A stretch of DNA of 64,000 bases from Squalus acanthias (lineage: Eukaryota). The translations under genes were made by a program, and so were the position numbers. The DNA is taken from contig CM059452.1 of assembly GCA_030390025.1 (NCBI GenBank), positions 10,230,001-10,294,000 on the forward strand, written 5' to 3'. The notes beneath the pieces are model-generated. The model saw only the letters and a list, made by a program, of their open reading frames with translations, made no database searches and was not told where the DNA came from. This document shows positions 23,609 through 57,474 of the stretch, piece by piece (within the stretch, counting starts at the first letter, position 1; each line of letters starts with the position of its first letter).

Positions 23609-24138
23609 ATGAGGTCGGCGATTTCTCTCAGTCTGTTGCTGGCTTTCTTATCCGGTGAGTAGTTTTTATTGTCCAAGTCTCTCACTGTTACTGTCTCAGT
23701 GTTAGTCTCTCTCTGGAATGTTAGAGAGTCTGGAATCATTTCTCCAGGATTAATCCTCGGGGTTTTTGATTGTTTTTACAGGTGTCCAGTCGGATGTCGT
23801 GTTGACTCAGCCAGAGGCAAAGACCAGGAGTCCCGGAGGCTCCCTGAGACTGACATGTAAAACCAGCGGATTCACTCTTGGCAGCTACTTCATGTACTGG
23901 GTCCGACAGGTTCCCGGACAGGGGCTGGAGTGGCTGGTTAGATACTACACTTCATCAAGCAATAACTACGCCCCAGGGATCCAGAGTCGATTTACTGCGT
24001 CCAAAGACATTTCAAACAGCATCTTCGCTTTAGACATGAAGAACCTGAGGACCGAAGACACCGCCATCTATTACTGTGTAGGATACGCACTGGTTATGGG
24101 CTACTGGGGAAAAGGCACCATGGTGACGGTGACGGCAG
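23609..24138 (+). CDS. IGHV: IgM heavy chain leader (23609-23654) and pre-joined VDJ exon (23782-24138)
   Basis: [16 protein letters not shown]|GTGAG, then [12 protein letters not shown]...[13 protein letters not shown]...[29 protein letters not shown]|GTAAG in one open frame with no intervening RSS. The leader intron is retained. Confidence 0.95.
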
Positions 24139-24175
24139 GTAAGAAACATTCACTCTTTCAGCAACTGTTCTATTT

Positions 24176-25450
24176 ATGTCTTTATTTTATATTTCTGTTT
24201 ATTTCAATAATTCATTCATTCACTGAAACTTGGGTTCGATGGATTCTGTATTGAGATTTTTTGCTCTGTTTCATTCGATTCTGCTGCAATGGGATAATAG
24301 ATTTAAACAGTTTCTTCAGAAAAAGTGTTGTTGAGGGATTGAGCCCCTGATTGATGTGATTTGGTGTTTATCTGCTGATGAGACTGTGAGCCTGAGTTAC
24401 TTTAAATACCCAACGGTTGTTGAACTGTTTGGCGATTCTACAATGTTTACTCTCGGTGACATCTAATGGTTGGTGGTTTTCTGATCAAATGTAAACATTA
24501 TGTGACTAAATGTGTTTGAAATAAGATTGCAGACAGAAAACAGAAAGATTTAGCGGTCAAAAATAATCTTAAGATATTTTAATGTATTTTTATTTGTGAT
24601 ATTTACATTATCATCTATTAATCTAATGTTCACCAACGGTCATATTCAATACGTGAAATGTTACTGTAATTTATAACTACATAATCAACACATTTGTCTC
24701 CTGAATGAGATTTAACTTAATATCAATAAAGTTATCATATGTAGTAATATCACCCAATATCACAACAATATCCTATATCAATAGTAATTTATTAACCATG
24801 ATCCGTCTACTCAGAATTCCGCTATCATTATTTTATATTTTTGTTTATTTCAATAATTAATTCGTTCAGTGATAGATGGGTTCGCTGGATTCTGTATTGA
24901 GATTTTTTTGCAAAGTTACATTTGATTCTGCTGAAAGGGTTTGTAGAATGAAGCTGCTTCTCCACAAAACGTTCTGTTGCGGGATTCAGCCCCTCAGTGA
25001 TGTGATTTGCTGTTTATCTGCTGAGGAGAGTGTGTGCCTGGGTTACTTTGAATAAGTAAAGTTTGTGAAACTGTTTGGAGTTTCTGCAATGTTTAATCTC
25101 GGTGACATCGAACTGCTGCAGGTTTTCTGATCTGTTTAAAACTGTTTGAAAGATGATTGTAGGCAGACAACAAGTAGGTTTTATAAATCAAAAATCATTT
25201 AAAAATAATTTAAAGCATGTTTTTATTGAAGTGAGAATTACAGATTAAACTATTAATCTATGGTTTACGGTGCTCACATTTAATAGGTGAAATATTACTG
25301 AAATTACGAATTATATAATTAACAATTGGCAGGTTGAAGGAGAGTTAAATTAATATAACTCAAACGATTATAATGCGGTAATATCGCCCAATATCACTCA
25401 ATATGCTGTAGTAATAATATTAATGTATTAAACATTATTCACCTTCCACA
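24176..25450 (+). repeat. ~650-bp tandem duplication at the start of the J-C intron
   Basis: TTTTATATTT.TGTTTATTTCAATAATT...GGATTCTGTATTGAGATTTTTT at about 24185 and 24831; alignable to ATATC.CCCAATATCAC at about 24787 and 25382. Confidence 0.8.
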
Positions 25451-27639
25451 ATTATGCTGAGCACTGGTCACAATTAACCTGAGCGGCGAATTTTAGAGGC
25501 TGGAGACAATTTCTGATTATGTCTGAAATTATTTTAATAACAGCAGACTGATTCCATCGCAGTGTTCAGTTTAATGAGGGTTTGAAATTAAATATTATCT
25601 CCCTGTTTCACACAGATGAATGACAGATTGTATTTAATTATGCATTAAATGCGAGTATAAAGTTCAGTTTGTAAATGTAATAAATCTGCCGGGTTATTAA
25701 ATTCTTACTGTGCAGCGGAAACCATGTAATTCCTTCAATATTATTTATTGTTTGATAGCGAGACAATTATCACTAAACTAATCTTAAACAGTTTGTAATA
25801 TCATAGGCTGAGCGGTCGCTGGCAGTCAAAGAATTGTTCATATGATTCTATTTAAATTCATGGAAGGTGCAGACTGCGTAAGGCTGGAGACAGACAAATA
25901 ACCCATTGACATCCAAGCAGATTAATTTAATTATAAAATGTTAATATTAGTTTTGAATTTAATAACAACATCCTGACTCCTATAGCTGTGCTGTATACGG
26001 GATAGAATTATAGACAGTGAACAGATTACTTCTGAGAGTTATGTTTAATTCTCATTAATGTTAAATTGATCAACAAAATCTCTCCTCCATTTGCTCATTA
26101 AATTTCAGTGTCGCAGATGGTCTGATTGATTTGTTCTCCTCCAGTTTTACACTGATCATTCTGGAACTGATTTTCAATAAATAGCAGAATATATTTAATA
26201 ATTAATTTACGAGCATTGTGTGAATTACGGGAGTAAAGTATAAAAAGATTGTCTGTTATTAAATAGCGGAGGCTCTGTTACTGACTGCAAACTGGCCGGT
26301 TGTCTTTTAATTCACGAAAATAGTATTTATAGTTAAGATCGAGGACAATGTTTAAACTCGAGAGCCCTGCTTTAGTAAACATACGGTGTTACAGTCCATT
26401 GGTAGTTAGTGAGATGTGACCACGGCCAGACTTTGAACTATTTAAAATAGTCCACTCCTAAATCCATCATGTGAAATCCACTCTGAGAAAAGATGGAGTT
26501 TATGTTGTATCAGAGAGTTCAGAAACATGCATTGTTTACAAGTGTGCAGATAGAGAGCGGGAATGTATTAGAAGTTAGTGACCATTATAAACTATTCAAA
26601 TGTGATTTGATTTAAGTAAAAGTAATATATTTGTCTGAACGTCTTTATCTATTAATATGATTTTTAATATTTTAATATTGATAGGTGTCATGTTAATTTA
26701 ATTGAAACCATATAAGTTCACAAGTTATCAGGCAGAAACAGGATTAAAATTAATATCAACTAATTTTATTATAATGCAGCTAACATCAATATTAACATAG
26801 AATATAATATGAGTGTGAATTTATTAAACATAAATGACCTCCCACATTTGCATTGTATACTGGACAGGATTACAGTTACTGCAAAATCTGAAGGGTTGGA
26901 GAGAATTTTAAATTATGTCTAAAATTAATTTAGAAACAATACATGTCTTACTCAGCTGTGCTCAGCTCGAGAAGGTGTCTCCGCAGATTTTAATGAATTA
27001 ACTTCGTGTTTTGCCTCGATGATTTTACCGGTTATATTTAATTATGAAATTATATTAACCCAGTGGTTCCTAGTTCGTTAAATTCTTACTCTGTCACGGA
27101 GTCCCTGTTATATGCAGCAAATTACCCAGTAATATGAATTATTTCAGTAAACTGGTTTTCAGGGAAACTAAATCTTATTTGTTTGTAAGATTGCAGACAG
27201 GGAGGGAGAAATGGTTTGAAGTCGAAGAGAGTTTTTCAAATAAAGATCAGTTTAATTTCAGAAAACGTGCAGACATGAGGTGGTCGGAAATTGACAAGAG
27301 ATCAATTAGAAATCAGCTTCATTGAAATTGACAGATTGAAGAGATCTATCTGCTGAGAGCACGATTGTTGCACCGTTTGTGTCTGTTCTGTTTCTGTGCG
27401 CCTGCTCACTGTGTGAGAATCAGGAGTCCTCCTGACTGCTTGTAAACCTGCTGGTTTGTTCTCTTGTGTTTCATGGAGTACAATTCGACTCATTTATTTC
27501 AGAAGCTTGTATCTGTGAGAAAAGCGATAGTTTGACTTTCAGTTTGAGGAGGCGCCTCCGAACTGGGATCAGTAATCCAGTTTGAGACAATCAGAAGGAG
27601 CATTTCAGAAACACATCTGGCAGAGAGTAGAAAGAGCTT

Positions 27640-28260
27640 TAATCAGTTTGTAACCCGTGCTGTACCTGCCCTGGGAGTGTTTGATGCGATAGTGTAGACG
27701 GTGCTTTACTCTGTATCTAACCTGTGCTGTACCTACCCTGGGAGTGTTTGATGGGACAGTGTACAGGGAGCTTTACTCTGTATCGAACCTGTGCTGTACC
27801 TGCCCTGCGAGTGTTTGATGGGAAAGTGTAGAGTGAGCTTTACTCTGTATCTAACCCGTGCTGAACTGCCCTGGGAGTGTTTGATGGGACAGTGTAGAGG
27901 GAGCTTTACTCTGTATCTAACCTGTGCTGTACCTGCCCTGGGAGTGTTTGATGGGACAGTGTCGACGGAGCTTTACTCTGTATCTAACCCGTGCTGTACC
28001 TGCCCCGTGAATCTTTGATGGTGCAGTGTAAAGGGAGAATTTACTCTGTATCTATCCCTTGTTGTAGCTGCCTTGGGAATGTTTGATTTTGCAATGTAGT
28101 TGGAGCTTTACTCTGTATTTAACCAGTGCGGTGCCTTACCCGGAGTGTTTGAGAGTGCTGTGCAGACTTGGCGTTGCTCGGAATCAATCCCTTCCTATAC
28201 CCGTCAGTACAGCGCATAGCAGGGCAGTGCAGAGGGAGCTTTACTCTGTATCTGTACTGT
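27640..28260 (+). repeat. 67-bp tandem repeat (GTGCTGTACCTGCCCTGGGAGTGTTTGATGGGACAGTGTAGAGGGAGCTTTACTCTGTATCTAACCC)
   Basis: About 7-8 diverged copies. Confidence 0.9.
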
Positions 28261-29009
28261 AACAGATCTGTGAGTGCTTTGTCCCGTGTTGTTCAAGGAA
28301 CCTTAATGTGCATCCAATTAATAAAGTGTGAGTTCTCCAGCCAGATATATAAAAATAAAACTTTCCATTGCTCCGATGAAACAACCGCGCATTAATTGAG
28401 TTTAACCTCATTGCAAATAAAACTGTCCATTTTTTAATGAATTGAAAAACTTTAAACATTTTGAGCATCAGATAATGATTGCATGAGATTGGCCTGATCC
28501 TGAGTTCACTTTCAGAACAAACAGTTTCAGGAAGTGACTGTAACGCTCCAGAAAGCAGCGCCTGTTCTGATCTGATGGGAGGCGGGAAGTTATTTTGAGA
28601 ATTTAAATGGAGAATGTCGAGACTCCCGCTCCAAATAACCATCCTGGGAACCTTATGTTTGAAAGCATTATATCGTTCAATTGTTTTTTAAAAAGGTAAC
28701 AGGCCGGGACAAACTCGGCTGAGGTTCAGTTATTGGACTGGGTCACAGCACAAGGCTCACAGTCACTGAGCCGCACCTCTGTGAAACATTTAAAGAGAAA
28801 CAGTCAGCCTGCGATGAGTCGTCATTCACAATAAGCGTTAAGACTCTGTGACGGGATCCGATTGAATCATTTGATTCAAATTCCTCAGTTCCTTTATTTA
28901 AACATCCTCTTGTATTATAACAAACAATAAAATAGATCTGATAGAGGTGTTCAACATTATGAAGCCTTTCCTTCCATTAAATCGGGAAGAACTAATTCCG
29001 CTGAGCCGT

Positions 29010-29700
29010 GTAGAATCACAGAATCTCAGAGCACAGAAGGGGCCATTCGGCCCGTCTTGCCTGTGCTGGCTTTGAACGAGCTGTCCAATCAAATCCCAGC
29101 TTTTTCCTCGTAACCCTCCAATGAGTCTCTTCAAGAACATGTCCAGTTGCCTCGTGCATTCCAGAAATTAACAACACTCCGTTTGAAAAAATGAGCCTCA
29201 TTTCCCCTCTAGATATTTTGCCAATTATTTTAATTCTGTGACCTTTGGTTACCGACATACTCGCCAGAAGAAACCGTGTCTCCCGACTTGCTCTGACAAA
29301 ACCTCCCTCAATTTTGAACAGCTCTATTAGGTCTCCCCTTAACCTTCACTGCTCCAAGGAACAATCCCAGCTTATCCAATCTCTCCACATAACTGAAGTC
29401 TCTCATCCCTGGTATCATCCTGGTCAACCTCCTCTGAACCCTCTCCAAGGTCTTGTCATCCTTCCTAAATTGTGGTGTCAGAATTGTGTACACTACTCCA
29501 TCTGATGCCTAACCAGTGATTGGTAAATGTTTAGCAGGACTTCCTTGTTTTTGTATTCAATGCCCCGATTGCAGTGGCAAGTATCCCACACACTTCTGGA
29601 ACCGCCTGATCAACTTGCCCTGCCACCTTCACAGATTTGTGAATAAGCAGCCCAGGTCCCTCTGCTCTTGCTTCCCCCACAAACCAGAAGCCAGAGTTGC
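29010..29700 (-). mobile_element. CR1-like LINE 3' fragment
   Basis: LERVQRRLTRMIPGMRDFSYVERLDKLGLF. Confidence 0.8.
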
Positions 29701-30862
29701 CCATATCAGCAGTCAGCACATTAGTTATTGTTTGTCCTTCCTTGCATAGAACCCACTGTTATCCAATCGATTTATAATGTTTAAGGATTGCCAATATTAG
29801 ATATTTAGAGAAGAAACCTGTGCCGATGTTTAGATTATGTTCGGTACAAACAGCAACAAGAAGTGACTGTAACTTCCCAGAAAGCAGCGCCTGTTCTCAC
29901 TGGTGGGAGGTTGGAAAGTAATTTGGAAAATGAAATGGAGCATTTAAAGAGCATCGTTCCATATAACCGGCTTTGGGAATTGTATTTAATTCGGATTATT
30001 TAATTGAGTGAGTGGGAGGAGGGAACTCAGGAGACATCCATTCAGTAGAATGGGATCGAGCACAAGTCACACAGCATCGCTCTCCCTCCAATTCTGAGAA
30101 GGAAAGAGAGAGACTCGAATCAATCCCGATTCATCTAAAGCTTGAATCTTAGAAACCAGGCTGTGCAAAAGTTCCCTATTCAAAGCTGTGCGCTGAATTA
30201 TTCCGATCACATTTTAAAGGAGACTTCAACCATTTATTGTAAACGTCCTTTATTGTCATGGGAACAAAGACGATTTAGATGAGATCTGATAGAGGGGTTT
30301 GGAATTCTAAAGGGTTTTATGAAGGGATTCGGGAAACATATTTCCCCGGGTCGGTGAGTTGGTGAGTAAACGTCACTGATTGAACATCAGCAACAACAGA
30401 ATGAAGGGCGGGGGTATTATTTTACTTTTATACACAGGGGGCTGTTAAACATGAGATGTCCTATCAGAAAGAGGGCTGCATGCAGAATCCACAACAGCTC
30501 GATAAAATTGCACAGTTGAGAAGATTGGGAATTGGAAGGTGCACGGGATTGGTGGAGAGATCTTACAGAGGGGTGACTGGTCGAATGGCCTCCTTCTGTG
30601 CTGTAAAGTTGTAATATTTTATAATTCTGGTCATGCTCTATAAACATGCTGGGATTTGTTTTAAAGGTAATACAACTAGTAGATCTAGCTGTAGGAGTTG
30701 TGTGATTAGGAGAACTAATCCCACCGCTATTCAAACAAGTCTATCCCCTGAAAACAACAACTTGCATTTATATAGCGCCTTTAACGTAGTAAAACGTCCC
30801 AAGACGATTCACAGGAGCGGAAGCAAATACAATCTGACACCGAGCCACATAAGGAGATATCG

Positions 30863-31617
30863 GCCTAGAAATTCGATTCGGAGGCTGGAGGGGTAAGGAT
30901 CGCGCGCGATATCAGCTACCGCGTCTGCCATTCTTGTTTCCCCACGCAGGAACCTCGGGTCCTGGGCCTCTCCCTCGTGCCGGCGCGCAGTGCTTGCGTG
31001 TTCCAAGGGCGCAGTTAGTGCGATGCGACCCCTGGGATCACGTGGGCCATGGAGAGCCAATGGCAGCAGACCATCTTCAATTCATAGATTTGACAGGAGA
31101 CCTGTCAAATCTGTGACTTGAAATCGGCCCCAAAAGAACAGCTAAACCTCAAATAAAAAAAAACATCACATTAATAAATTAACTATAGTTAAATAAATTA
31201 ACCACTTTAAACAAATATTTAAATTTTTGAAAAAATTAAAATACTTTTTAAAAGTTATAAAAATAAACTTACCTTTTTTAAAGTCTCTAAAAAAGATAAA
31301 CCTGTTGAAATTTTTTTAAAAATTATACTTAATTAACTACTTACCTTGTTCAAAAGGGGTCTTACGCCTCCTTTTTTACCAGCGTCGCTTCTTCAATACT
31401 TACCCTAGCGTTGAAACCTGGAAAAAAAACCTAAGTGTGCTGCGTGCGCGCAGCCTCTAGTGCGTCCGCGGTTCACCTCGGAATCGCCCCATTCGGCATA
31501 CCGGAAGTGCCGGTTTCCCGCGCATGCGCAGTGCATGCAGGAAACCGGCACTTCGGGAATGAATACGGGTGAGTTCGCACTGAGTACTCACCCGAGAACG
31601 GCCGAATTTTTTGGCCA
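30863..31617. mobile_element. MITE-like element with imperfect TIRs, inserted in a SINE-tail-like repeat
   Basis: GGCCTAGAAATTCG ... CGAATTTTTTGGCC, with an internal hairpin at about 31496-31560. Confidence 0.55.
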
Positions 31618-32161
31618 TCATGTTTTCTTTAGTATGGTTGGTAGTTACTCTGACAGTTGAACAAAAGCTTGGTCAAAGAGGTAGGTTTTAAGGCAGCATC
31701 TTACAATGGAGAGATGACGAAACTTTGATATAATGGAATGGCCCGATTCTGTGCTGATAATAAGAGGCTGACAGCAAAAGGATGTAGGGAGGAGCTCAGT
31801 GGACAGAATGTGAAAAAATCTAATGTGAAAGTGGTTGGGGAATGAGGGGAGTGTTCCATAACAGGCGATCAAGAGCTGGAGGAAGTCCACGATACAATAT
31901 TACGGCATTCACTCGGTATAAAGGGGCCTCATGGACAGAATGCCCCTTTCAGACTCCTGACTTTTCTTATGTAGAAGACTGGAGTCACATGAAGGCATTT
32001 CACGTCGTGTCTCACAACTCACAGAAACTCAAATACTGATGTAGGTTTTGATCGACAAATGATGGAATTAGTTGATCCTGTCGTCACATTTCGAGTTGTT
32101 TGGTTATGTTATAAGCACGGATTACAGAGTCTAACTTGTTCAATTGGCCATTCTTTCCCAG

Positions 32162-32461
32162 CGACACAGTCTCCTCCCACCCTCTACGCCCTGCTCTCCT
32201 CCTGTGAACAACCCAACACCGGCGGCCCCGTCACATACGGCTGTTTGGCGATGGACTACTTCCCGGAAATCACCAGCCTTTCCTGGAGTAAAGATAAAGA
32301 GCCGATCACCACTGGATTGAAGACCTACCCGTCAGTGTTCAACAAGAAGGGAACCTACACCCTGAGCAGCCAGTTAACCGTCACCGAGTCAGAGGTGGGG
32401 AGCAGCACAATCTACTGCCAGGTTCGACGAAGTGGGTCGGACTGGATTGTCAAAATGCCAG
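32162..32461 (+). CDS. IGHM: IgM CH1 exon
   Basis: CCCAG|, [17 protein letters not shown]...[10 protein letters not shown]...W...YCQV..KMP G|GTTAGT; 300 nt, phase 1-1, with the light-chain-linking Cys. Confidence 0.95.
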
Positions 32462-32479
32462 GTTAGTGTTGTGGGATAC

Positions 32480-33232
32480 AGGGGGGAAACTGTGAAAAGC
32501 AGAGAAGTTATGTTCAACTGCTATACAACTTTGGTTAGACCAGACTTTGAGTACTGTGTACAGGTCTGGTCTCCATATCACACTTAGAGTACTGTGCACA
32601 GGATGGTCTCCATATCACACTGAGAGTACTGTGTACAGGTCTGGTCTCCAAATCACACTTAGAGTACTGTGTACAGGTCTGATCTCCATATCACACTAAG
32701 AATACTGTGTACAGGTCTGGTTTCCATATTATAAGAATGATACAGAGGCACTGGAGAAGTGCAAAAAAAAGATTTACAGCGACAATACCAGAACTGAAAA
32801 ATTGTAACTGTCAAGAACGGGTTTGGGATCTTTTCTCTAGAAAAGAGAAGGTTGAGGGATGACCGAATAGAGGTCTTTAAAATTATGAAGGGGTTTGAAA
32901 GGATAGATGTAGAGACAATATTTCTGCTTGAGGAGGAGCCCGATACTAGGGGCCATGAATATAAGATAATCACTGATAAATCCAAAGGGAATTCAGGAGA
33001 AACTTCTTTACCCAGAGAGTGGGTAGAATGTGGAACTCGCCACCACATGGAGTAGTTGAGGCGAATAGAATAGATGTGTTTCAGGGGAATCTAGATAGGT
33101 ACAGGAGGGAGAAAGGAATAGAAGGTTATGTTGATGAGGGAGATGAAGTAGGGAGAGAGGAGGCTCATGTGGAGCATAAACACCGACCTGTTGGGCCGAG
33201 TGGCCTGTTTCTGTGTTGTAGATTCTATGTAA
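32480..33232 (+). mobile_element. CR1-like fragment with internal ~37-bp tandem repeat (32545-32725)
   Basis: CR1 RT C-terminal motifs; about five copies of GAGTACTGTGTACAGGTCTGGTCTCCATATCACAC. Confidence 0.75.
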
Positions 33233-33301
33233 GAAACCGCTTTACAGTTCTTATTGTTTGGATTACAACAAATAATCCCAATAAAATGTATCTTCTTGCA
33301 G

Positions 33302-33613
33302 ATCGTGTGGTACATCATCCAACTGTGATCCTCACCCTGAGTTCCAGTGAAGAAATCATCAGCAGCAGGTCTGCAACCGCCGTGTGTTCAATCATCGATT
33401 TCCGTCCAATGTCACTGACGGTGAATTGGCTGAAGAATGGACAACTCATGGATTCGGGCTTCGTCACCTCTCCCGTCTTTAAAGTTAACGGGAACTTCTC
33501 GGCGACCAGTCTGCTGACATTCCCCACCGGGGAATGGTTCGCCGGCTCGGTCTATACCTGCCAGGTCTCTCATCAAGGGGACATCCAAAGCCGAAACATC
33601 ACCAGATCTCCGG
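33302..33613 (+). CDS. IGHM: IgM CH2 exon
   Basis: TTGCAG|, [11 protein letters not shown]...AVCSIIDF...WLKNG...YTCQVSH...RSP G|GTAAG; 312 nt. Confidence 0.95.
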
Positions 33614-33674
33614 GTAAGAGACACAATCCCGAGAAGTCCCAGGTCATTCTGAGCGCCCCACTCAGTCTGGAGTC

Positions 33675-34280
33675 ATAGAGTCATAACGGCACAGAAGGAT
33701 GCCATTCGGCCCATCGAGTCCGTGCCGGCTCTCTGTTGAGCAATCTAGTCAGTCCCATTCCCCTGCTCTATCCCTATAGCCCTGCAAGTTTATTTCCCTC
33801 AAGTGCCGATCTGGTCTCCCCTTGAAAACATTGAGTGTCTCCGCTTCCACCTCTTCCGTTCGCATTCCAGGTTATCACCACTCGCTGCGTAAAAAGGCTT
33901 TTCCACACAACGCCCCTGTATCTCTCGCCCAAAAGCTAAAATCTGTGACCCTAGTTCTTATGCCATCAACTAGTGGGAACAGCCTTTCCCCGTCAAGCCT
34001 ATCCAAACCCGTCATAATCTTGTACACTCTTATCAAATCACCCCTCAACCTCCTTTGCTCTAATGAAAACAAATCCAGCTTCTCCAACCTGTCCTTGTAG
34101 CTAAGACCCCCCATCCCCGGAACCATCCTGGTAAATCTCCTCTGCACCCTCTCAAGGGCCTTCAAATCCTTCATAAAACGTGGTGATCAGAACTAGACGC
34201 AATGCTCCAGTTGTGGCCTAACCAGCGCTTTATAAAGGTTCAGCATAACTTCTCTACTTTTGTAATCAATACCTCTATTG
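33675..34280 (-). mobile_element. CR1-like LINE 3' fragment
   Basis: LERVQRRFTRMVPG...RRLRGDLI. Confidence 0.85.
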
Positions 34281-34569
34281 TTTTGTTGGACTTTTATTGG
34301 AATTAGTAAAAAGCACAGATCTATTTCTAATTTCCAATCATACAGTTTATGTTTCCTTCCGATGTCAGTGCTGACCCAGGGTTCCTCACGGTTCAGGATT
34401 CCAAGCACTTCGCCAAAGGTTTCCCTCAGCTGTGATGTCAGACAGTGAGCGAGGTGTCCGCGGTCTCAGGTTTATCCTGAGTTGGCTGATCATGTTCGGA
34501 GCTGCAGTAGGTGTCTGGAACCCTTTACTGGTAATTGTTTCGGGACCCACTGCTAGAAAGGACATCTGC

Positions 34570-35120: not shown

Positions 35121-35762
35121 GCTATTAATGCCCTGCGGTCATATTTCCTTCTGACTCTCTCACCAGACATGTTAAGTGCTCACTAATGTCAGAAATGAAC
35201 AAACTACTTCACATCGGCATTACACATTATTCTCCACCCAAAGACCCCTTGGAAGTCCATTCTCCCGACCTTTCACTTCTCCTCTGACGGGGCCTGCAAC
35301 TGGTTCCTGGACTGCACCTAAAATCCTGGATATCATTTGACACTCGTTTTGAACCAGCGTAATATTCGTGCAGAGCTCTTGACCCTGGGGGTGGAGCCAT
35401 TATAATGAGCGGAAATGCGTTCGGGCACAAGGATCTATAGACGGGCGTAAAGGAGCAAGGGATTTCAGGAAGAGCGCTACTCAGTGCGTAACACAATTGC
35501 GCCCGGATTTATTCATTTTTTACGCCGGGTATTTGCTTCACAGCCCATTACAGGAGGCTCTGGGAGCAAATACACAGGAAATGTTAAAGAGTCTCCCGGA
35601 ATCGTTGTCAATTCGTTGTCCTTCCAATAACGATGGTGTTTAAGCAGCAACGAGAGGTTAATATCTCAAAGGTGATTTATTCTCCCTGAGAGAGTGAAGG
35701 CTGAATACTGGTGTCCTGATTCTGAAGATGAAGCTTTGCTTGATTTTCATTTCTGTTCACAG

Positions 35763-36071
35763 ATGGTTCCTCATGCAACGATCCAGAAATCACTCTTCCG
35801 CAACCGTCACTAGATCAGGTTTTACTGGAGGCGATGGTGACCTTAACCTGCGTCGTGTCTAATGCTCCTTATGGAGTCAACGTGTCCTGGACCCGAGCAA
35901 AGGAGACTTTGAAATCAGAGATTGCCGTCCAACCCGGAGAGGCTCCCAACAGTGTGATCAGCAACTTAAACATCTCGACACAGTCCTGGCTGAGTGGGGA
36001 TGAGTTCGACTGCGTGGTGAGCCATCAGGATATGCCGACTCCTATAAGAGATTCCATCCACAAGGAAAAAG
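35763..36071 (+). CDS. IGHM: IgM CH3 exon
   Basis: CACAG|, [16 protein letters not shown]...[16 protein letters not shown]...[18 protein letters not shown]|GTGAG; 309 nt. Confidence 0.95.
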
Positions 36072-36589
36072 GTGAGCGGTGAGATTGGAGCAATAAGTGA
36101 GACTCTGTGACTATTTCCGGTGTTTGCACACGGACCAATTCGTTCTATTAAGTGTTTTAATGGACTGCTCTGATAATTCAATGGGCAATTCCACTAACTA
36201 AACCCCCTGGGACCAGAGATGACGCATTTAAAGGGAAGTTGGATAAGTCAATGAGGGAAAAATGAATAGAAGGATATGTTATTAGGGTTAGATGAAGTAA
36301 GGTGGGAGGAGTCTCGTGTGGAGCATAAACAACGGCATTGACCAGTTGGGCCGAATGAACTGTTTCGATGATATAAATTCTATATAATTTTCCAGTCCAA
36401 CTCTTCAAGCTCCCAGAGAGAATGATTGAATCCCCCTCTGCTCCGGGCTGGAAAACCGGACAGGACACAGAGGGGAAAAGGGAATCCTTTAACATTCAGC
36501 GCAAGGCACATTTCTCTCACATCTAACCGCCGGTTTCACTGTCCCTGTAATTTTCCAGTTTATTGACCTTTATTGTGATTGTTCTGCAG

Positions 36590-36981
36590 TTAAAGATGCG
36601 CGGGAACCGTCCGTGTCTGTCCTCCTGCCCCCGGCAGAAGAAGTCTCCGCTCAGAGGTTCGTCACCCTCACCTGCTTAGTGAGAGGTTTCTCCCCCCAAG
36701 AGATCTTCGTCAAGTGGACCGTCAATGAAAAGCCGGTGAATTCCGGCAACTACAAGAACACCGAGGTGATGGCGGAGAACGGCAGCAGTTCCTTCTTCAT
36801 GTACAGCCTGTTATCCATTGCAGCGGAGGAATGGGCCAGCGGCGCTTCTTACTCCTGTGTGGTGGGACATGAAGCGATCCCCTTGAAGATCATCAACAGA
36901 ACGGTTAATAAATCGAGTGGTAAACCCAGTTTTGTCAACATTTCCCTTGTTCTGATGGACACCGTCAATTCTTGTCAATGA
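36590..36981 (+). CDS. IGHM: IgM CH4 exon with secretory tailpiece
   Basis: CTGCAG|, VKDAREPSV...LTCLVRGF...YSCVVGHEA...[24 protein letters not shown]. Internal membrane-form donor G|GTAAAC at 36919/36920. Confidence 0.97.
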
Positions 36982-37009
36982 GAATCTCTCGATTGCATTT
37001 CAGTTCTTG

Positions 37010-37025
37010 AATAAAAACCAATAAA
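37010..37025 (+). terminator. Polyadenylation signals for secreted IgM
   Basis: Two AATAAA hexamers 30-45 nt after the stop codon. Confidence 0.75.
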
Positions 37026-37409
37026 GGCCTTTTCTACCTCTCGTCAGTTACACACACAGCCGCTCAATTAATTGTGTTTCCCAGTTTTGCCAAGGGGGAG
37101 GGCTGTTTATCTGAAGCAGGATATTTGCAAGTCTCGGGCCCAAGGCTTGTACAGCCAGCTCTCCCAGCTCAGATACACCACGGGTTAGAGACAGACTGAA
37201 GCTCTTTCATGACAGGATTCCTCAAAGTTACTTCAGCAACTTTCCTCCCGCTGGGGGAATCAAAAAGTTCCCATTTCCGACAAACAAACGCAGCACATTT
37301 AGATCTCGGTGTCCCTGTTTCTCGTGCTGTCCATCCCTTCAGAATTGGGGCTGGTTTTATTTTGCAGCATCGCAACCTCTGGGATCCGAAATAAGGCCAC
37401 ACACGAACA

Positions 37410-39755
37410 CGAACTGTAACCCCCACTGCCCCACCAGAGAGAGGGGAAAGGGCAATTGTTAACCCACAGTACCTCTCACTCCCCCACCAGAGAGAGGGGA
37501 AAGGGCAATTGTTAACCCACTGTTTCCCCCACTCCACCACCAGAGAGAGGGCAAAGGGCAATTGTTAACCCACTGTACCCCCACTCCCCCACCCGAGAGA
37601 GGGGAAAGGGCAATTGTTAACCCGCTGTACCCCCAGTCCCCACCAGAGAGAGGGGAAAGGACAATTGTTAACCAACTGTAACCCCCACTCCCCCACCAGA
37701 GAGAGGGGAAAGGGCAATTGTTAACCCACTGTACCCACACTCCCCCACCAGAGAGAGGGGAAAGGGTAATTGTTAACCCATAGTACCCCCCACTCCCCCA
37801 GCAGAGAGAGGGGAAAGAGCAATTGTTAACCCACTGTACCTGCCACATCCCCACCCCCCCAGAGAGAGGGGAAAGGGCAATTGTTAACCCACTGTACCCC
37901 CACTCCCCCACCAGAGAGAGGGGAAAGGGAAATTGTTAACCCACTGTCCCCTCACTCCCCCACCAGAGAGAGGGGAAAGGGCAATTGTTAACCCACTGTA
38001 CCTCCCACTCCCTCACCAGGGAGAGGTGAAAGGGCAATTGTTAACCTACTGTACCCACACTCCCCACCAGAGAGAGGTGAAAGGGCAATTGTTAACCCAC
38101 TGTACCTCCCACTCCCCACCAGAGAGAGGTGAAAGGGCAATTGTTAACCCACTGTACCCACACTCCCCACCAGAGTGAGGTGAAAGGGCAATTGTTAACC
38201 AACTGTACCCCCAGTCCCCACCAGAGAGAGTGGAAAGGGCAATTATTAACCAACTGTACCTCCCACTCCCCCACCAGAGAGAGTGGAAAGGGCAATTGTT
38301 AACCCACTGTACCCCAACACCCCCACCAGAGAGAGGGAAAGGGCAATTGTGAACCCACTGTACCCCCACTCCCCCACCAGAGAGAGGGGAAAGGGAAATT
38401 GTTAACCCACTGTCCCCTCACTCCCCACCAGAGAGAGGGGAAAGGGTAATTGTTAACCCACTGTACCCACACTCCCCACCAGAGAGAGGGGAAAGGGCAA
38501 TTGTTAACCCACTGTACCTCCCACTCCCTCACCAGGGAGAGGTGAAAGGGCAATTGTTAACCCACTGTACCTCCCACTCCCCCACCAGAGAGAGGGGAAA
38601 GGGCAATTGTTAACCCACTGTACCTCCCACTCCCCACCAGAGAGAGGTGAAAGGGCAATTGTTAACCCACTGTACCTCCCACTCCCCACCAGAGAGAGGT
38701 GAAAGGGCAATTGTTAACCCACTGTACCCACACTCCCCACCAGAGAGAGGTGAAAGGGCAATTGTTAACCAACTGTACCCCCAGTCCCCACCAGAGAGAG
38801 GGGAAAGGGCAATTATTAACCAACTGTACCTCCCACTCCCCCACCAGCGAGAGGGGAAAGGGCAATTGTTGACCCACTGTAACTCCCACACCCCCACCAG
38901 AGAGACGGGAAAGGGTCATTGTTAACTCACTGTACCCCCACTCCCCCACCAGAGACACGGGAAAGGGTAATTGTTAACCCACTGTACCCCCCATTCCCAA
39001 ACCAGAGAGAGGGGAAAGGGCAATTGTTAACCCACTGTAGCCCCCACTCCCCCACCAGAGAGAGGGGAAAGGGCAATAATTAACCCACTGTACCCCCACT
39101 CCCCCACCAGTGAGGGGAAAGGGCAATTGTTAACCCGCTGTACCTGCCACTCCCCCGCCAGAGAGAGGGGAAAGGGCAATTGTTAACCCGCTGTACCCCC
39201 ACTCCCCCACCCGAGAGAGGGGAAAGGACAATTGTTAACCCACTGTACCTGCCACTCCCCCGCCAGAGAGAGGGGAAAGGGTAATTGTTAACCCACTGTA
39301 CCCCCCACTCCCTCACCAGAGACAGGGAAAGTTCAATTGTTAACCCACTGTACCTCCTACTCCCCCGACAGGGATAGGGGAAAGGGTAATTGTTAACCCA
39401 CTGTACCTCCCACTCCCCCAGCAGAGAGAGGGGAAATGGCAATTGTTAACCCACTGTACCTCCCACCACCCGCCCCCACCACCAGAGAGAGGGAAAGGGC
39501 AATTGTGAACCCAATGTACCCCCACTCCCCCACCAGAGAGAGGTGAAAGGGCAATTGTTAACCCACTGTACCCCCCACTCCCCCACCAGAGAGAGGGGAA
39601 AGGGCAATTGTTAACCCACTGTACCCCCACTCCCCCATCAGAGAGAGGGATAAGGGCAATTGTTAACACACTGTACCTCCCACTCTCCCATCAGAGAGAG
39701 GGAAAAGGGCAATTGTTAACCCACTGTACCTCCACTCTCCCATCAGAGAGAGGAG
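37410..39755. repeat. ~51-52-bp minisatellite (CCCCACTCCCCCACCAGAGAGAGGGGAAAGGGCAATTGTTAACCCACTGTA)n
   Basis: About 45 copies in the CH4-TM1 intron. Confidence 0.95.
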
Positions 39756-40099
39756 AGGTGAACCTATCTCAATTATATAAAGTCAGTTGCCATCTGTAGA
39801 AAGTCAGCTTCTAACTCAATGTCCGAAAACATTAAACTTGCCGCATGGAAATCATGTTGTGATATAAATATTTAGTCAACATATAATCTTTAACAAGTGT
39901 TTGGAGTAAACCTGTCCCTGTTATTCGTAAACTAACAGACTGAATTTTAACAGTCCAATTCTAACTGGTGATTGAATCCTCTGCGGGTTTCTCACGGTTG
40001 TGTCCCTGATGGTTCTGAGGCCCATCGGTTGAATTGTTGCATTCCATCGGTTGACGTCACATTGCGTCTCACACAGAACACATTTACACAGAGCGGGGA

Positions 40100-40625
40100 A
40101 GAATGCGTGTAAAAGTGAGTGTATCTGTGCTTATGTGTAAGTGTGTTTGCGATTTTGTATGAGTGTGTGTGTTTTTGTGTAAGTGCACACTTACACACAA
40201 GCACACAGAGACTTACACATGACCACACACATTAACACACTGACACAGTATATTACACATACCCAGAATATAATACACAGCGTCATTATCAGACCCAGTT
40301 ATTAGTACTCTCTGAAACTTTGAACAATAGCAAAAATACACACACACACGCTTACACAAAACACACACAAACACAAGCATTCACAGACACACGCATGCAT
40401 AAACACAAACAAATACACAATTACACACAAACACACACACATACATGCAAACACACACAGTTGCACTTAAATACGCACGCGCTGACACGTAAATATAGAC
40501 ACACACTTACACAATACACACACACACTTAAACATAAATACACACACACTTACACATCAACACATACATTAACACAGAAACTCAGACTAAACCAAAACAA
40601 AAGTTCGTCATACACACAAACACAA
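40100..40625. repeat. TG/CA-rich microsatellite
   Basis: Degenerate (CA)n and (TG)n. Confidence 0.85.
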
Positions 40626-41271
40626 TCACTAAAGCGCACAAAAAACGTCAGGCTGTCGACTAATGTAGAATAAAAATGCAGTTTTTACGGACAGTCTTCA
40701 ACGATTGTTCTGATAAAATTATTCCTGATAACGTAACATCTCACATTTCTCTATTCTGGTCCTACTCATACACTGAATCACTGTTCTTGTTGGAAACTGA
40801 TACAAGTTAATTTTGTTCAGAGCATTGCCGTAAGAAATAAATGATCAAGATTATAACTCACAGCTGATCTCTTTCCCAGCCCCCTTGACAGTCTCCAAAT
40901 AACTATCTGCATAAAGCTATCGTTAAAATAATCGATATCAGTCAGCAAACATCCCTCGATATTTCATCATATTATTCCCGACTGATGGATCGTACGAAAT
41001 TGATGCAAAATCAATTAGCCTGTGTCATTGAAGAAAAAATGTCATATTTTCCAACACGGACTATAGGAGGATAATAAAGGAAGATCGACTGTGGAGTTAG
41101 GAACAGAGATAGATTGCTGAGAGTGATTACATTAACACAAGATATACCTTGAAAATTAAATTAGAGAATAAACTAATAACTTAAGGAAAAGAAAGGAGAA
41201 TATATAATAATAATATGATATATTGGATTAATAAACGATCTGAATATACTTCCTCCTCTACATCCCCGTAG

Positions 41272-41399
41272 ATTCATCAGACCACATCTTGATTGAAGAC
41301 TATGAGGAAGAGAGCGGCAACATCTGGACAACCGCTTCCACATTCATCATCCTGTTCTTCCTGAGCATTTCTTACAGCGCTGCCGTCACTCTCGTGAAG
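41272..41399 (+). CDS. IGHM: IgM TM1 exon
   Basis: CGTAG|, DSSDHILIEDYEEESGNIWTTASTFIILFFLSISYSAAVTLVK|GTGAGA; CART motif; phase matches the CH4 internal donor. Confidence 0.95.
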
Positions 41400-41404
41400 G
41401 TGAG

Positions 41405-41800
41405 AAGTGGAAGGAGCCGCACCGCGGGATACACTCACTGGAAGGAGACGCGCCCTGGCACACACTCACTGGAAGGAGACGCACCGCGGGACACACTCAC
41501 TGGAAGGAGACACACTAAAAGGAGGACGGGATCCAGGAGCGAGAACGAGGCCCAGGAGCGAGTTCGGGACCCAGGAGCGAGCTCGAGGCCCAGGAGCGAG
41601 GACGAGGCCCAGGGGCGAGGACGGGGCCCAGGAGCGAGATCGAGGCCCAGGGGCGAGGTCGGAACCCAGGAGCGAGAACGGGGCCCAGGAGCGAGGTCGG
41701 GACCCAGGAGTGAGGACGGGGCTCAGGAGCGAGGACGAGCCCAGCAGCGAGGTCGAGATCGAGGCCCAGGAGTGGCGCAGCGTGGACCAGCAGCGGGGTC
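41405..41800 (+). repeat. Short GC-rich tandem repeats after TM1
   Basis: CACTCACTGGAAGGAG-type ~31-bp repeats, then ~19-bp GAGGCCCAGGAGCGAGGAC repeats. Confidence 0.8.
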
Positions 41801-41869
41801 GGGGGGACCACACTGCAGCGTGTGAAACCCAGGCAGAGACGACCTGAGGGAAGGAGGGAGCAGGACAGT

Positions 41870-44800
41870 AGGAGTATGTTTGTGTGTGTGTGCTAGGCCG
41901 ATGTAGCAGAGCCTGGTCTCCAACCGTCTTGGATCCCCTTGCCATTGGACCAAGATCTTGTTCTGTCAAGCCCCTGTGGTAGCTGGTGTGCAACGGCCAC
42001 CCCACATTAAAATAATTCACGCACAGGCATCTTCCACCCTTTAAAATGAAGTCCGGGACCTTGAACGTCAGGACCCTCATGGACAACCCCAACAGCGACA
42101 GACCGGAACGCCATACTGCTCTCTTTGACCGGGAGCTCAGACGTTTGGACATAGTCATCGGTGACCTAAGCGAGACCCGGCGGGCAGGGGATGGCCAGCT
42201 CAAGGAGCAAGGCGGTGGTTACACCTTCTTCTGGAAAGGCAAACCTGAAGAAGACCGCCGCCTCCATGGGGTAGGCTTCACCATACAAAAATAGCTGGTT
42301 GAACGTCTCACAGACTCCCCTTGTGGAATAAACGAACGCCTCATGATTGTACAGCTCACCCTAGCCCGGAACCAGTGCGTTACGGTCATCAGTGTGTACG
42401 CCCCAACACTGGAAGCCACAGACGAGACCAAAGAGGAATTCTACTCCAGCCTCGAACAATCCCTGTCCCGAGTCCCAACGGGCGACAAGCTGATCCTCCT
42501 TGGAGACTTCAACACCAGAGTTGGAAAGGACACAGATCTCTGTGGTGGTGTGATTGGCAGAGAGGGGGTAGGGAAAGCCAACTCCAATGGTACCCTCCTC
42601 CTATCGAAATGCTTAGAACATGGCCTTGTCATAACCAACACCTTGTTCCATCAGAGAGACAAGTACAAGGTTTCATGGCAGCACCCTCGCTTCAAGCACT
42701 GGCATCTGCTGGACTACGTCATCGTCCGAGCGAGGGCCTGCAAGTATATCCATATCACCCGCGCCATGACAGGAGCTGACGAATGCTGGACAGACCACCG
42801 CCTAATCCGCTCTGTCATCTCCATCAATATAGCCCCAAAACAGCGGCAGCAACAGAAACAATGCCGCAGGAAAATCAATGCTGGAGCACTCAAACACCCC
42901 GCTGAGAAAGCCCTATTCAGCCTGCGCCTCACAAACAACGTGACGGCTCCCAGTGATGCAGAGACACAGACTGTCCACAGCGCTTGGTCTGCAGTCAAGG
43001 CCTCCATAATCAGCACCTGTGAAGAGATGCTCGGTCACTCGACCAGGAAACAGCAAGACTGGTTCAACAAGAACGACCAGAAGATCCAGGAGCTAATAAG
43101 CCGCAAGCGCAAGGCATCCCTGATCTGGAAACAGCAACAGAACAAGAGAGCAAGAAAGCAGCTCTACAGACGCCTGAAGGCCGAGGTCCAACAAAAAACT
43201 CGCGACCTAAAGAACATATGGTGGGTGGAGAAAGCACAGGAGATCCAGCAGCTAGCCAACACCCACAACGTGCGTAGATTCTTTAGCGCAGTCAAGACCA
43301 CCTACGGCCCAAGCACCCAAGGTCCTACCCTACTGTGCGCCAAGAACGGAGAGGTACTCATCAAAGACAGAGAGGCAGTCAGTGCCCACTGGAAGGAGCA
43401 CTTCGAAGATCTCCTTAACCGAGACTCTGTCTTCGAAGCGAGTGTCCTCAACTTCATCCCGCAGCATGCTACCCGCCACCACCTCAGCACAACCCCAGCC
43501 CGGCATGTGGTTGAAAAGGCCATCCGAGAACTCAAGAACAACAAGGCCGCAGGAGCAGATGGAATCCCCGCCGAGGCGCTGAAACATGGCGGAGAAGCAC
43601 TATTGGCGCGACTACATGAACTCATTTCTCTTATTTGGAAGAAAGAGAGCATGCCAGGGGATCTCAGAGACGCCATAATGGTAACCATCTTCAAGAAAGG
43701 TGGCAAGTCCGATTGCGGTCATTACAGAGGAGTCGCCCTGCTGTCTGCCACAGGGAAAGTCATCGCAAGAATCCTCCTCAATCGCCTTCTCCCAGTGGCT
43801 GAAGAGCTCCTCCCAGAGTCGCAATGAGGATTCCACCCACTAAGGGGCACAATGGACATGATCTTCACTGCGCGTCAACTACAAGAGAAATGCAGGGAAC
43901 AGCACCAACCGCTGTACATGGCCTTCTTTGACTTCACAAAGGCCTTCGACACCATCAACCGTGAGGAATTATGGAGTGTCCTCCTCAAATTCGGCTGCCT
44001 TCAAAAGTTTGTCACCATCCTCCGCCTGCTTTTACGATGACATGCAAGCCGTGATCCTGACCAACGGATCTACCACAGGCCCAATTCACGTACGGAGTGG
44101 GGTCAAGCAAGGCTGTGTCATTGTATCAATGTGCTTCTCGATCTTCCTTGCTGCAATGCTCCATCTCACCCTCAGTAAGCTCCCCGCTAGAGTGGAGCTA
44201 ATCTACAGAATAAACGGAAAACTGTTCAACCTCCGACGCCTCCAGTCCAGATCCAAGGTCGTCCCATCCTCTGTCATCGAATTACAGTATGCAGACGACG
44301 CTTGCGTCTGCACTCACTCTGAGGCCGAACTCCAAACCATCTTCAACACCTTCACCGAAGCATATGAGAGCATGGGCCTTACACTAAACATCCGTAAGAC
44401 AAAGGACCTCTACCAACCTGCCCCCGCCACACAGTACTGCCCCCCGATTATCAAAATGCATGACGAGGCCTTGGACAACGTGGACCACTTTCCATACCTC
44501 GGGAGCCTACTGTCAGCAAGGGCAGACGTCGATGACGAAGTCCAACACCGCCTTCAGTGTGCCAGTGCAGCCTTCGGTCGCCTGAGGAAGAGAGTGTTTG
44601 AAGACCAGGACCACAAACCCAGCACCATGCTCATGGTCTACAGAGCAGCAGTGATACACGCCCTGCTGTATGCCTCAGAGACATTGACCATGTACAGCAG
44701 GCACCTCAAAGCACTGGAGAGGTACCACCAACGCTGCCTCTGCAAGATCCTGCAAATCCATTGGCTGGATAGGCACACCGACATCAGTGTTCTCGCTCAG

Positions 44801-45292
44801 GCCAACATCCCCAGCATCGAAGCTTTGACCACGCTCGATCAGCTCCGATGGACGGGCCACATCGTCCGCATGCCCGATACGAGACTCCCAAAACAAACGC
44901 TCTACTCGGAGCTCCGACACGGCAAGAGAGCCCCAGGTGGGCAGAGGAAACGCTTCAAGGACACCCTCAAAGCCTCCTTGAAAAAGTGTAATATCCCCAC
45001 CGATACATGGGAATCCCTGGCCGAAGATCACACAAAGTGGAGGAGAAGCATCCGGGAAGGCGCCGAACACCTCGAGTCTCTTCGCCGGGAGCAAGTGGAA
45101 GCCAAGCGCAAACAGCGGAAGGAGCGCACGTCAACCCAAGCACCCCACCCAGCCGCCCCTTCAACCACTGTCTGCCCCACCTGTGACAGAGACTGTAGGT
45201 CCCGCATTGGACTCATCAGTCACCTGAGAACTCATTGTTAGTGTGGAAACAAGTCATCCTCGGTTCCCAGGGACTGCCTGAGATGAGAAGAA
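41870..45292 (+). mobile_element. Near full-length RTE-clade LINE (endonuclease + RT + C-terminal CCHH finger), inactivated
   Basis: TLNVRTL...LSETR, VYAPT, GDFN, WTDH, DFTKAFD, GVKQGC, YADD, CPTC...HLRTH. Stops at about 42292 and 43825, frameshift near 44030. Confidence 0.93.
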
Positions 45293-45418
45293 GTTGAAAA
45301 GACTCAATCCATTCACACTTCGATCTGACTGAAGCGGTTTGACAAAGTCTCACTGATAAAATCCCTGAGATAAATGCCACAAACCACTAAATCTCTACTT
45401 CATTCTTTTATCTCTCAG

Positions 45419-45427
45419 GTGAAGTGA
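45419..45427 (+). CDS. IGHM: IgM TM2 exon (VK*)
   Basis: Polypyrimidine tract ...TCTCTCAG|GTG AAG TGA gives the canonical KVK cytoplasmic tail. AATAAA at about 45490 and 45863. Confidence 0.85.
   Translation: MK

Positions 45428-57291: not shown

Positions 57292-57323
<32 letters not shown>

Positions 57324-57434: not shown

Positions 57435-57474
<40 letters not shown>

Follow-up and report, generated by a model that had tools for sequence, protein, structure and literature searches.

An IgM heavy-chain gene with V, D and J in one exon

The 64-kb window analyzed here, a single stretch of a Squalus acanthias assembly, contains on its forward strand, between 23609 and 45427, a complete IgM heavy-chain minicluster in the V(D)J-C cassette form, whose isotype is confirmed as mu (Table 1). 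One V-set domain (Pfam E 8e-20) is followed by exactly four constant exons, each of which is recognized as a C1-set domain (Pfam E 3e-9 to 3e-23). An earlier note on this DNA had described every exon as open, with GT-AG sites in compatible phases, and the present analysis bears this out: all seven acceptors carry AG and all seven donors GT, and the secreted form runs for 1713 nt, or 571 codons, across six exons without a stop or frameshift. A membrane form is predicted from the cryptic donor in CH4 and the TM1 and TM2 splice sites; joined in this way, CH4, TM1 and TM2 would keep the frame over 1788 nt, or 596 codons. AATAAA hexamers are present for both forms, as had been claimed; with 116 occurrences in the window, this motif is weak evidence for polyadenylation sites.

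The assignment to IgM is consistent throughout the constant region. The domain cysteines are complete and the tailpiece is present, the translated secretory tail containing an NIS motif, an N-glycosylation site, and a Cys before the final Gln. Over residues 6-128, CH4 plus the tail can be aligned with IgM heavy constant mu chains in the PDB as far as their C-terminus, tailpiece included, and 8 of the 11 best rows there bear the name "heavy constant mu"; the best protein identity for CH4 is 81-89%. When CH1-4 and TM1 were used as tblastn queries against the 64-kb window, only the four constant exons and their mutual paralogy were recovered, and no further constant or TM exon, or TCR constant exon, was found. 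The CH1 exon also encodes a Cys ahead of the domain, at the position used for light-chain pairing.

Table 1. Features of the antibody gene and of its TCR-type neighbours, in window coordinates
Feature	Position	Strand	Details
NAR-TCR cassette, unrearranged, with V-delta (left flank)	676-2485	+	RSS scan
NAR-TCR V	within 676-2485	+	23-RSS at 990
NAR-TCR D	within 676-2485	+	12-RSS on both sides, 1379/1393
NAR-TCR J	within 676-2485	+	23-RSS at 1774; donor near 1829
Leaderless supporting V-delta, after NAR-TCR J	within 676-2485	+	acceptor near 2156; perfect 23-RSS at 2463
Nearest left-hand V, TCR alpha/delta-type	11488-11835	-	23-RSS at 11497
IgM leader exon	23609-23654	+	ATG at 23609; phase-1 donor, GT at 23655
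Fused VDJ exon, V-set	23782-24138	+	357 nt; CDR3 VGYALVMGY; J motif present; donor GT at 24139
CH1 exon, C1-set	32162-32461	+	Pfam E 3e-14
CH2 exon, C1-set	33302-33613	+	Pfam E 3e-17
CH3 exon, C1-set	35763-36071	+	Pfam E 3e-9
CH4 exon, C1-set, with mu-type secretory tailpiece	36590-36978; stop 36979-36981	+	Pfam E 3e-23
Cryptic donor in CH4 for membrane form	G/GT after 36919	+	from sequence
Two AATAAA hexamers	37010-37025 (at 37010 and 37020)	+	29-39 nt past secretory stop
Minisatellite in CH4-TM1 intron	37413-39753		53 bp x 44.6 copies
TM1 exon, acidic spacer and transmembrane segment	41272-41399	+	AG acceptor before 41272
Decayed LINE in TM1-TM2 intron, sense orientation	42343-45241	+	endonuclease/RT ORFs in two frames; 2.9 kb
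TM2 coding part, Val-Lys-stop	45419-45424; stop 45425-45427	+	AG acceptor before 45419
AATAAA past TM2	45490	+	hexamer match
Nearest right-hand V, TCR alpha/delta-type, intact	49611-49934	-	23-RSS at 49615; 4.2 kb from TM2 stop
Eight further right-hand TCR-type V loci	52101-62139	both	listed below
TCR-type V with in-frame stop(s)	52111-52386	-	
TCR-type V, open	53296-53609	-	
TCR-type V with in-frame stop(s)	56402-56911	+	
TCR-type V, open	57836-58158	+	
TCR-type V fragment	59157-59240	+	
TCR-type V fragment	59945-60127	-	
TCR-type V with in-frame stop(s)	61430-61744	+	
TCR-type V fragment	61890-62139	-	

The V, D and J elements of the gene are contiguous in one exon, whose reading frame stays open between the leader junction and the J donor. 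Each flanking V that has an end carries a heptamer/nonamer signal, but an RSS scan of 23609-24300 found none. The VDJ exon therefore cannot rearrange, and the gene would thus yield one invariant mu chain if transcribed. The closest relatives of its V region are shark IgH V sequences (80% identity to Chiloscyllium punctatum and 77% to Heterodontus francisci HV01, with all 24 candidates at E<=0.001), and the leader is also similar to that of HV01. In a tree that took 12 of these 24 matches together with 14 of the 36 matches to a flanking V, the V region falls inside the IGH clade with an SH-aLRT support of 98.

Germline V-D-J joining stems from RAG activity in the germ cells of an ancestor. A somatic B-cell rearrangement captured by the assembly would be indistinguishable from such a join by its junction sequence alone, but one clone should contribute a negligible share of the reads, so an assembler would be expected to keep the majority configuration. 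Moreover, genome-derived gene models with a fused VDJ exist in three other sharks, the whale shark, Mustelus asterias and Scyliorhinus torazame (P0004, P0013 and P0018), and germline-joined VDJ clusters have long been known, are well established and are standard in elasmobranch biology (PMC5192425, PMC4279169). Somatic capture is, in our judgement, extremely improbable, and we infer a germline origin for the fused exon by reasoning on assemblies rather than from a DNA test.

TCR alpha/delta-type V segments on both sides of the gene

The intact, pre-joined IgM gene is physically interspersed with V segments of TCR alpha/delta type. Besides the IgM V, the window holds 12 V-like loci, and 23-RSSs are present at 11 sites. 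The nine TCR V genes or pseudogenes that the earlier note had placed to the right of the gene resolve into three open loci, three with in-frame stops and three fragments, and the TCR V genes and NAR-TCR cassette it had placed to the left were also found. That the flanking Vs are TCR alpha/delta-type segments, a point on which the note's interpretation depended, is supported by several lines of evidence in addition to their 23-RSSs. Their best single-domain PDB chain matches are TCR alpha and V-delta1, the ranking of V domains being confined to single-stretch rows because multi-domain scFv and diabody chains inflate whole-sequence ranks. Among the 36 matches of a flanking V at E<=0.001 (of 44 candidates), four are named "T-cell receptor alpha/delta variable" and none is named as an Ig chain, with a best protein identity of 71%, and the tree described above sets the flanking Vs apart from IGH. 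On the left flank, the NAR-TCR V, whose best PDB matches are VNAR domains, occurs together with a leaderless supporting V-delta, a combination that is a signature of TCR-delta. C-delta, C-alpha and PSMB5 were all found to be absent from the 64-kb window, the constant exons by tblastn.

The window contains only three runs of N, at 10854-10992, 21767-21944 and 63362-63583. The linkage of the IgM gene to the right-hand Vs is gap-free, as had been stated, because no N occurs between 21945 and 63361; two of the runs intervene between the gene and the NAR-TCR side. These two runs, and the LINE fragments that lie between TM2 and the first right-hand V at 47.9-49.2 kb, are what could be expected if the juxtaposition of IgM and TCR V sequences were an assembly misjoin through repeats. 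However, the unbroken sequence on the right and the publication of the same interspersion for four elasmobranch chromosome-level assemblies (PMC12227049) make a misjoin highly improbable.

The physical interspersion with TCR Vs raises a different possibility, namely that the gene functions as an Ig/TCR hybrid, being opened and transcribed in thymocytes or having its VDJ exon spliced to TCR-delta constant exons. Trans-rearrangements of shark IgH V to TCR-delta, which are discussed in PMC12227049, would be in keeping with such a function. Yet the VDJ exon, having no RSS, could not rearrange to a TCR D or J, its donor faces the gene's own CH1 8 kb downstream in a window without a TCR constant exon, and precursor T cells hold Ig transcripts, if any, at extremely low levels according to Malecek et al. 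(2008). We regard a hybrid function as very unlikely.

Structural integrity and RNA evidence

Two large repeats lie within the introns of the gene, a minisatellite between CH4 and TM1 and a decayed LINE between TM1 and TM2, the latter in sense orientation, so that it could disturb the membrane form. These repeats, together with the broken state of six of the nine right-hand Vs, are compatible with the gene being a silent, recently duplicated relic that is structurally intact but unused and is heading towards pseudogene status, as are many of the surrounding Vs. The region upstream of the leader is also without a promoter octamer, the sole match in the window lying at 26846 on the reverse strand and being at chance level (at least one match arises in 94 of 100 shuffles). 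In addition, CDR3 VGYALVMGY is not demonstrable in any RNA run or contig, among 14 runs and 32 contig pieces listed. Specifically, none of the 14 runs contains at least half of 35 sampled words from the VDJ exon, the top shares being 0.40 and 0.37, and no piece spanning the CDR3 (24079-24105) is present among the 32 matches listed, with 7423 further, from the contigs of four runs on 23300-24500. The CDR3s at two loose contig ends, 24078 and 24083, differ from that of this gene.

Against the relic stand 571 codons over six exons without a stop or frameshift, splice sites that are all canonical, and the retention of every domain cysteine and of the tailpiece. At an identity of at least 95%, the 5'UTR, leader and frameworks are matched by contigs of V genes that are related or identical, and 23845-23923, a stretch that includes CDR1, is reproduced by a piece from run X1 with no difference; leader-to-V splice joints at the IgM gene are seen in RNA-like contigs of related V genes. 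The contigs of the four RNA runs break at CDR1, CDR2 and CDR3, as is expected for a mixed V repertoire, and in two runs, pieces covering 24112-24175 continue unspliced through the J donor, with 2 differences. Absence from Logan contigs weighs little because these drop rare variants. Collectively, we consider the relic possible but doubtful. The gene may be transcribed in B cells.

A probable germline-joined IgM gene of the antigen-receptor complex

Earlier work on germline-joined clusters, from the Litman and Hsu laboratories, relied on phage and BAC clones, which gave no view of the chromosomal surroundings. The present gene shares with the germline-joined IgH clusters known from sharks, skates and ratfish an in-frame VDJ exon, no RSS, a normal constant region and an invariant CDR3 (PMC5192425, PMC4279169), and there is no difference in kind between them, although here the TCR V neighbourhood is visible. 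It also resembles nurse shark IgM1gj, in which a germline-joined VDJ is found on a mu-type constant region and would mean an innate-like fixed specificity; IgM1gj, however, is missing C-mu2 and has three constant domains (PMC5192425, PMC4279169). The CH2 exon of the present gene is intact and is recognized as a C1-set domain. It is therefore not an IgM1gj-type gene, and this assignment is ruled out.

TAILV and VH-delta segments are rearranging Vs that carry RSSs and are used with the D, J and C of TCR-delta. They represent IgH-like Vs in TCR-delta loci, TAILV in the nurse shark and VH-delta in frogs, birds and the coelacanth (PMC12227049), and the present locus is like them in placing a V domain of the Ig heavy-chain type among TCR alpha/delta Vs. 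In contrast to these segments, the V here is pre-joined, carries no RSS and comes with a complete C-mu gene of its own, and the missing RSS and the dedicated C-mu gene rule out a V of the TAILV/VH-delta type.

The arrangement is instead like that of the elasmobranch antigen-receptor complex (AgRC), in which IgM, IgW and IgNAR miniclusters show linkage with TCR alpha/delta. According to Flajnik et al. (Sci Adv 2025; PMC12227049), IgH clusters adjoin TCR alpha/delta, and V exons of TCR type are interposed; the window likewise combines an IgM minicluster with TCR alpha/delta-type Vs to its left and right and a NAR-TCR V not far away. The main text of that paper, however, places no germline-joined IgM cluster in the complex and uses the term once, for a ratfish V. 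We found no published statement of a germline-joined IgM cluster within a TCR V array in a search that lay mostly outside subscription journals. The novelty that the earlier note had suspected is nevertheless not sustained, since IgH/TCR V interspersion was published in 2025 for sharks and rays (PMC12227049) and germline-joined clusters have long been known. Thus, what remains of its hybrid Ig/TCR locus is the physical interspersion of an intact, pre-joined IgM gene with TCR Vs and not the claim to be new; the shared chromatin that the note had proposed stands as a conjecture.

We consider it likely that the gene is a conventional four-domain IgM minicluster, with V, D and J joined in the germline, within the elasmobranch antigen-receptor complex. 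RAG activity in ancestral germ cells would have joined the V, D and J of a minicluster that would sit in this complex, where IgH clusters alternate with TCR alpha/delta-type V segments. Transcription, if any, would then give a single invariant mu chain, with use of a polyadenylation site past the CH4 tailpiece producing the secreted form and splicing of the cryptic CH4 donor to TM1 and TM2 producing the membrane form. Other shark and skate genes that are joined in the germline suggest, by analogy, that the fused-VDJ gene may have an early-life or "innate-like" role.

A more novel proposal would be that the gene encodes an "innate" mu chain that is conserved and independent of RAG, the four-domain equivalent of IgM1gj, and that it is regulated by its chromatin position among the TCR alpha/delta Vs, for example through an early-life or thymus-associated opening of the region. 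We regard this as distinctly unlikely. If it is true, then the locus is a natural case in which a single chromatin domain serves a B-cell receptor that is fixed and T-cell receptor segments that rearrange.

For the likely reading, a conventional germline-joined minicluster, the IgM gene at 23609-45427 leaves the current picture of Ig and TCR loci unchanged. Relative to the main text of PMC12227049, the detail added is that a fully pre-joined, apparently intact IgM cluster can have a TCR alpha/delta-type V at a distance of only 4 kb. The locus could be used as an annotated reference for the antigen-receptor complex and as a candidate for early-life expression of germline-joined IgM genes. Furthermore, the window shows at base level how Ig and TCR sequences are interspersed, an arrangement on which current ideas about a common origin of antibody and TCR loci rest.

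Anatomy and isotype of the IgM gene

The interval from 23609 to 45427 on the plus strand holds one complete immunoglobulin heavy-chain gene, here called the IgM gene, and every structural detail named in the earlier note, which had described it as complete and intact, was borne out. The VDJ exon follows the leader across an intron of 127 nt and is open throughout: it takes up the last residues of the leader peptide, continues into framework 1, and closes with the J motif and a GT donor. AG acceptors were found by script at seven of seven positions, as were GT donors (7/7), and a G/GT donor within CH4, after 36919, is compatible with the AG acceptor of TM1. The gene was searched exon by exon, and adding up the exon lengths (not a spliced model) puts the secreted form at 1713 nt (571 codons) and the membrane form at 1788 nt (596 codons).

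Pfam identifies the VDJ exon as V-set (E 8e-20) and finds a C1-set domain in CH1, CH2, CH3, and CH4 (E 3e-14, 3e-17, 3e-9, and 3e-23). Residues 6-128 of the CH4 exon, tail included, align to IgM heavy constant mu chains in the PDB at their C-terminal end, and "IgM heavy constant mu" is the name of 8 of the 11 best PDB rows for this exon. Four constant exons, a mu tailpiece, and TM1/TM2 thus make this an IgM gene. The same features rule out IgW or IgNAR, whose domain counts appear in review passages. In a protein search with the V region, all 24 candidates lay within E 0.001 and none reached 90% identity; the closest are shark IgH V regions, with 80% identity to a Chiloscyllium punctatum model and 77% to both Heterodontus francisci HV01 and a Scyliorhinus torazame model. 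For CH4, where 18 of 23 candidates passed, identity is 81% to a C. punctatum fragment versus 64% to a Callorhinchus milii "immunoglobulin heavy chain." By eye, the leader peptide matches that of H. francisci HV01 (P0002) in 14 of 16 residues, and the Chiloscyllium and whale shark models have different leaders; this likeness is a hint at family or species but not proof.

Features of the IgM gene and its flanks
Feature	Position	Strand	Remark
NAR-TCR cassette	676-2485	+	unrearranged
VNAR-like domain	691-1041		
NAR V signal	990		23-type; RSS scan
NAR D signals	1379/1393		12-type on either side; RSS scan
NAR J signal	1774		23-type; RSS scan
NAR J donor	near 1829		
Acceptor of leaderless V	near 2156		
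Signal of supporting V-delta	2463		perfect, 23-bp spacer
Tandem repeat	2440-2745		
N run	10854-10992		
N run	21767-21944		
Leader exon	23609-23654	+	ATG at 23609
VDJ exon	23782-24138	+	357 nt, GT donor at end
Octamer match	26846-26853	reverse	J-CH1 intron
Repeat	27627-28152		67 bp x 7.9; J-CH1 intron
CH1	32162-32461	+	
CH2	33302-33613	+	
CH3	35763-36071	+	
CH4	36590-36978	+	stop codon directly after
Minisatellite	37413-39753		53 bp x 44.6 copies, 88% matches; CH4-TM1 intron
TM1	41272-41399	+	compatible with TM2
Open frame	41289-41825	+	
LINE	42343-45241	+	TM1-TM2 intron
TM2	45419-45424	+	stop 45425-45427
V	49611-49934	-	open, 23-bp-spacer signal
V	52111-52386	-	in-frame stop
V	53296-53609	-	open, 23-bp-spacer signal
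V	56402-56911	+	in-frame stop
V	57836-58158	+	open, 23-bp-spacer signal
V	59157-59240	+	fragment
V	59945-60127	-	fragment
V	61430-61744	+	in-frame stop
V	61890-62139	-	fragment
N run	63362-63583		

The pre-joined VDJ exon

A heptamer-spacer-nonamer scan found no recombination signal (RSS) at 23609-24300, whereas one stands behind each flanking V that has an end, indicating that V, D, and J are fused in frame; rearrangement is therefore impossible, and a single CDR3 is encoded. That the assembler captured a somatic rearrangement is unlikely on general grounds. Genome-derived models from whale shark, Mustelus asterias, and S. torazame (P0004, P0013, and P0018) also run uninterrupted from V through CDR3 into J, two of them continuing past J into CH1, and joined genes are thus common in shark assemblies. 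A TAVG motif opens CDR3 in both P0013 and P0018. Review passages describe many clusters whose segments are joined in part or in full in the germline, apparently via RAG expression in germ cells, and the best-known germline-joined case, nurse shark IgM1gj, is without C-mu2 (PMC5192425, PMC4279169). In contrast, CH2 is intact here, which excludes an IgM1gj-type gene. A pre-joined VDJ is a classical trait of cartilaginous-fish Ig genes.

A search of sequencing runs with 35 sampled words of the VDJ exon listed 14 runs from five studies, none with RNA on record; the best word shares were 0.40 and 0.37, and none of the 14 contained at least half of the words. Contigs of four of these runs (three organisms), aligned to 23300-24500, cover the 5′ untranslated part, leader, and frameworks at very high summed depth, show splice joints from leader to V, and diverge into other sequences at CDR1, CDR2, and CDR3, as expected if the IgM repertoire were mixed and came from the same or a closely related species. 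In run X1, a piece at 23845-23923 spans CDR1 with no differences, and in run X2 a piece at 23917-23979 spans CDR2 with one. None of the 32 contig pieces listed, out of a set with 7423 more, crosses CDR3 (24079-24105), although contigs cannot show absence; other junctions occur on loose contig ends at 24078 and 24083, and pieces from two runs (24112-24175) cross the J donor unspliced. A V gene like that of the IgM gene thus occurs in those runs and is probably expressed, and the fixed junction itself may or may not be used.

The main live alternative, that the gene is a silent relic, appears possible but rather unlikely. No octamer precedes the leader, and the sole match in the window, in reverse orientation within an intron, reflects a count at chance level. 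A LINE in sense orientation, with two long decayed frames (endonuclease-RT, RVT_1), accounts for the 4-kb length of the TM1-TM2 intron and might hamper production of the membrane form, and a 2.3-kb minisatellite occupies much of the CH4-TM1 intron. None of these three features breaks the IgM gene. Skipping the TM1 donor would leave ~140 further codons without a stop (41400-41825) across GC-rich 19/31/57-bp repeats, probably meaningless repeat sequence.

TCR-type V segments and the NAR-TCR cassette

With the window's own V domains as queries, tblastn found 13 V-like loci. Nine lie to the right of the IgM gene, the number of TCR V genes or pseudogenes counted in the earlier note, and no N intervenes, so that the right-hand linkage it proposed is indeed contiguous. 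The nearest is 4.2 kb from the TM2 stop. Five are on the minus and four on the plus strand, and six of the nine are broken, unlike a tidy translocon V array. Their assignment to the TCR alpha/delta type is supported by three comparisons. Among PDB chains with one matched V domain, to which the ranking was confined, TCR alpha chains and a V-delta1 chain rank highest; multi-domain scFv/diabody chains head the lists because several domains add up. For the nearest V, at 49611, the only specific names among its relatives (36 of 44 candidates) are "T-cell receptor alpha/delta variable" (n = 4, carp and Sinocyclocheilus), and none of the 36 bears an Ig-chain name. Finally, a quick maximum-likelihood tree of 33 rows (7 window Vs, with 12 of the 24 IgM-V relatives and 14 of the 36 found for the 49611 V) places the IgM V within the IGH group (SH-aLRT 98) and the five TCR-like window Vs opposite it, together with the 49611-V relatives; the NAR V forms a long branch of unsettled placement. 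Both reference groups are matches to the window's own V queries, and the tree is thus not fully independent.

At the left end lies a NAR-TCR arrangement of TCR-delta, as reportedly defined by Criscitiello et al. in 2006. Its first domain best matches shark VNAR domains (PDB), the J donor points toward a supporting V-delta that has no leader, and the signal logic is heavy-chain-like. The cassette that the earlier note placed to the left is present with V, D, and J signals, but two N runs stand between it and the IgM gene. Right after the supporting V-delta, translation of the minus strand gives a repeated peptide unit, which reflects a short tandem DNA repeat containing heptamer-like sequence.

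Relation to the published antigen-receptor complex

Misassembly is an unlikely source of the juxtaposition of IgM and TCR Vs: the sequence is gap-free, and the same pattern, IgM genes nested among TCR alpha/delta V and named the antigen-receptor complex, is described in passages of Flajnik et al. (Sci Adv 2025, PMC12227049), which also mention a NARTCR V. The suspected novelty of the nesting is thereby removed; of the proposed hybrid Ig/TCR locus, the physical mixing is correct and already published. The idea that the hybrid is functional, with T cells using the gene or its transcript joined to a TCR-delta constant region, finds no support: the VDJ exon has no RSS, its own C-mu lies downstream, and no TCR C exon occurs within the 64-kb window. 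The main text of PMC12227049 uses "germline-joined" once, for a ratfish V in a tree, so the combination seen here is not spelled out in that text, although its table S1, a list of coordinates, may contain clusters of this sort or even the present one. Our literature search, which covered few subscription journals, found no other paper on a germline-joined IgM cluster among TCR Vs. Specific to this locus is one well-preserved IgM cluster with four constant domains and a pre-joined VDJ, lying 4 kb from a TCR-type V.
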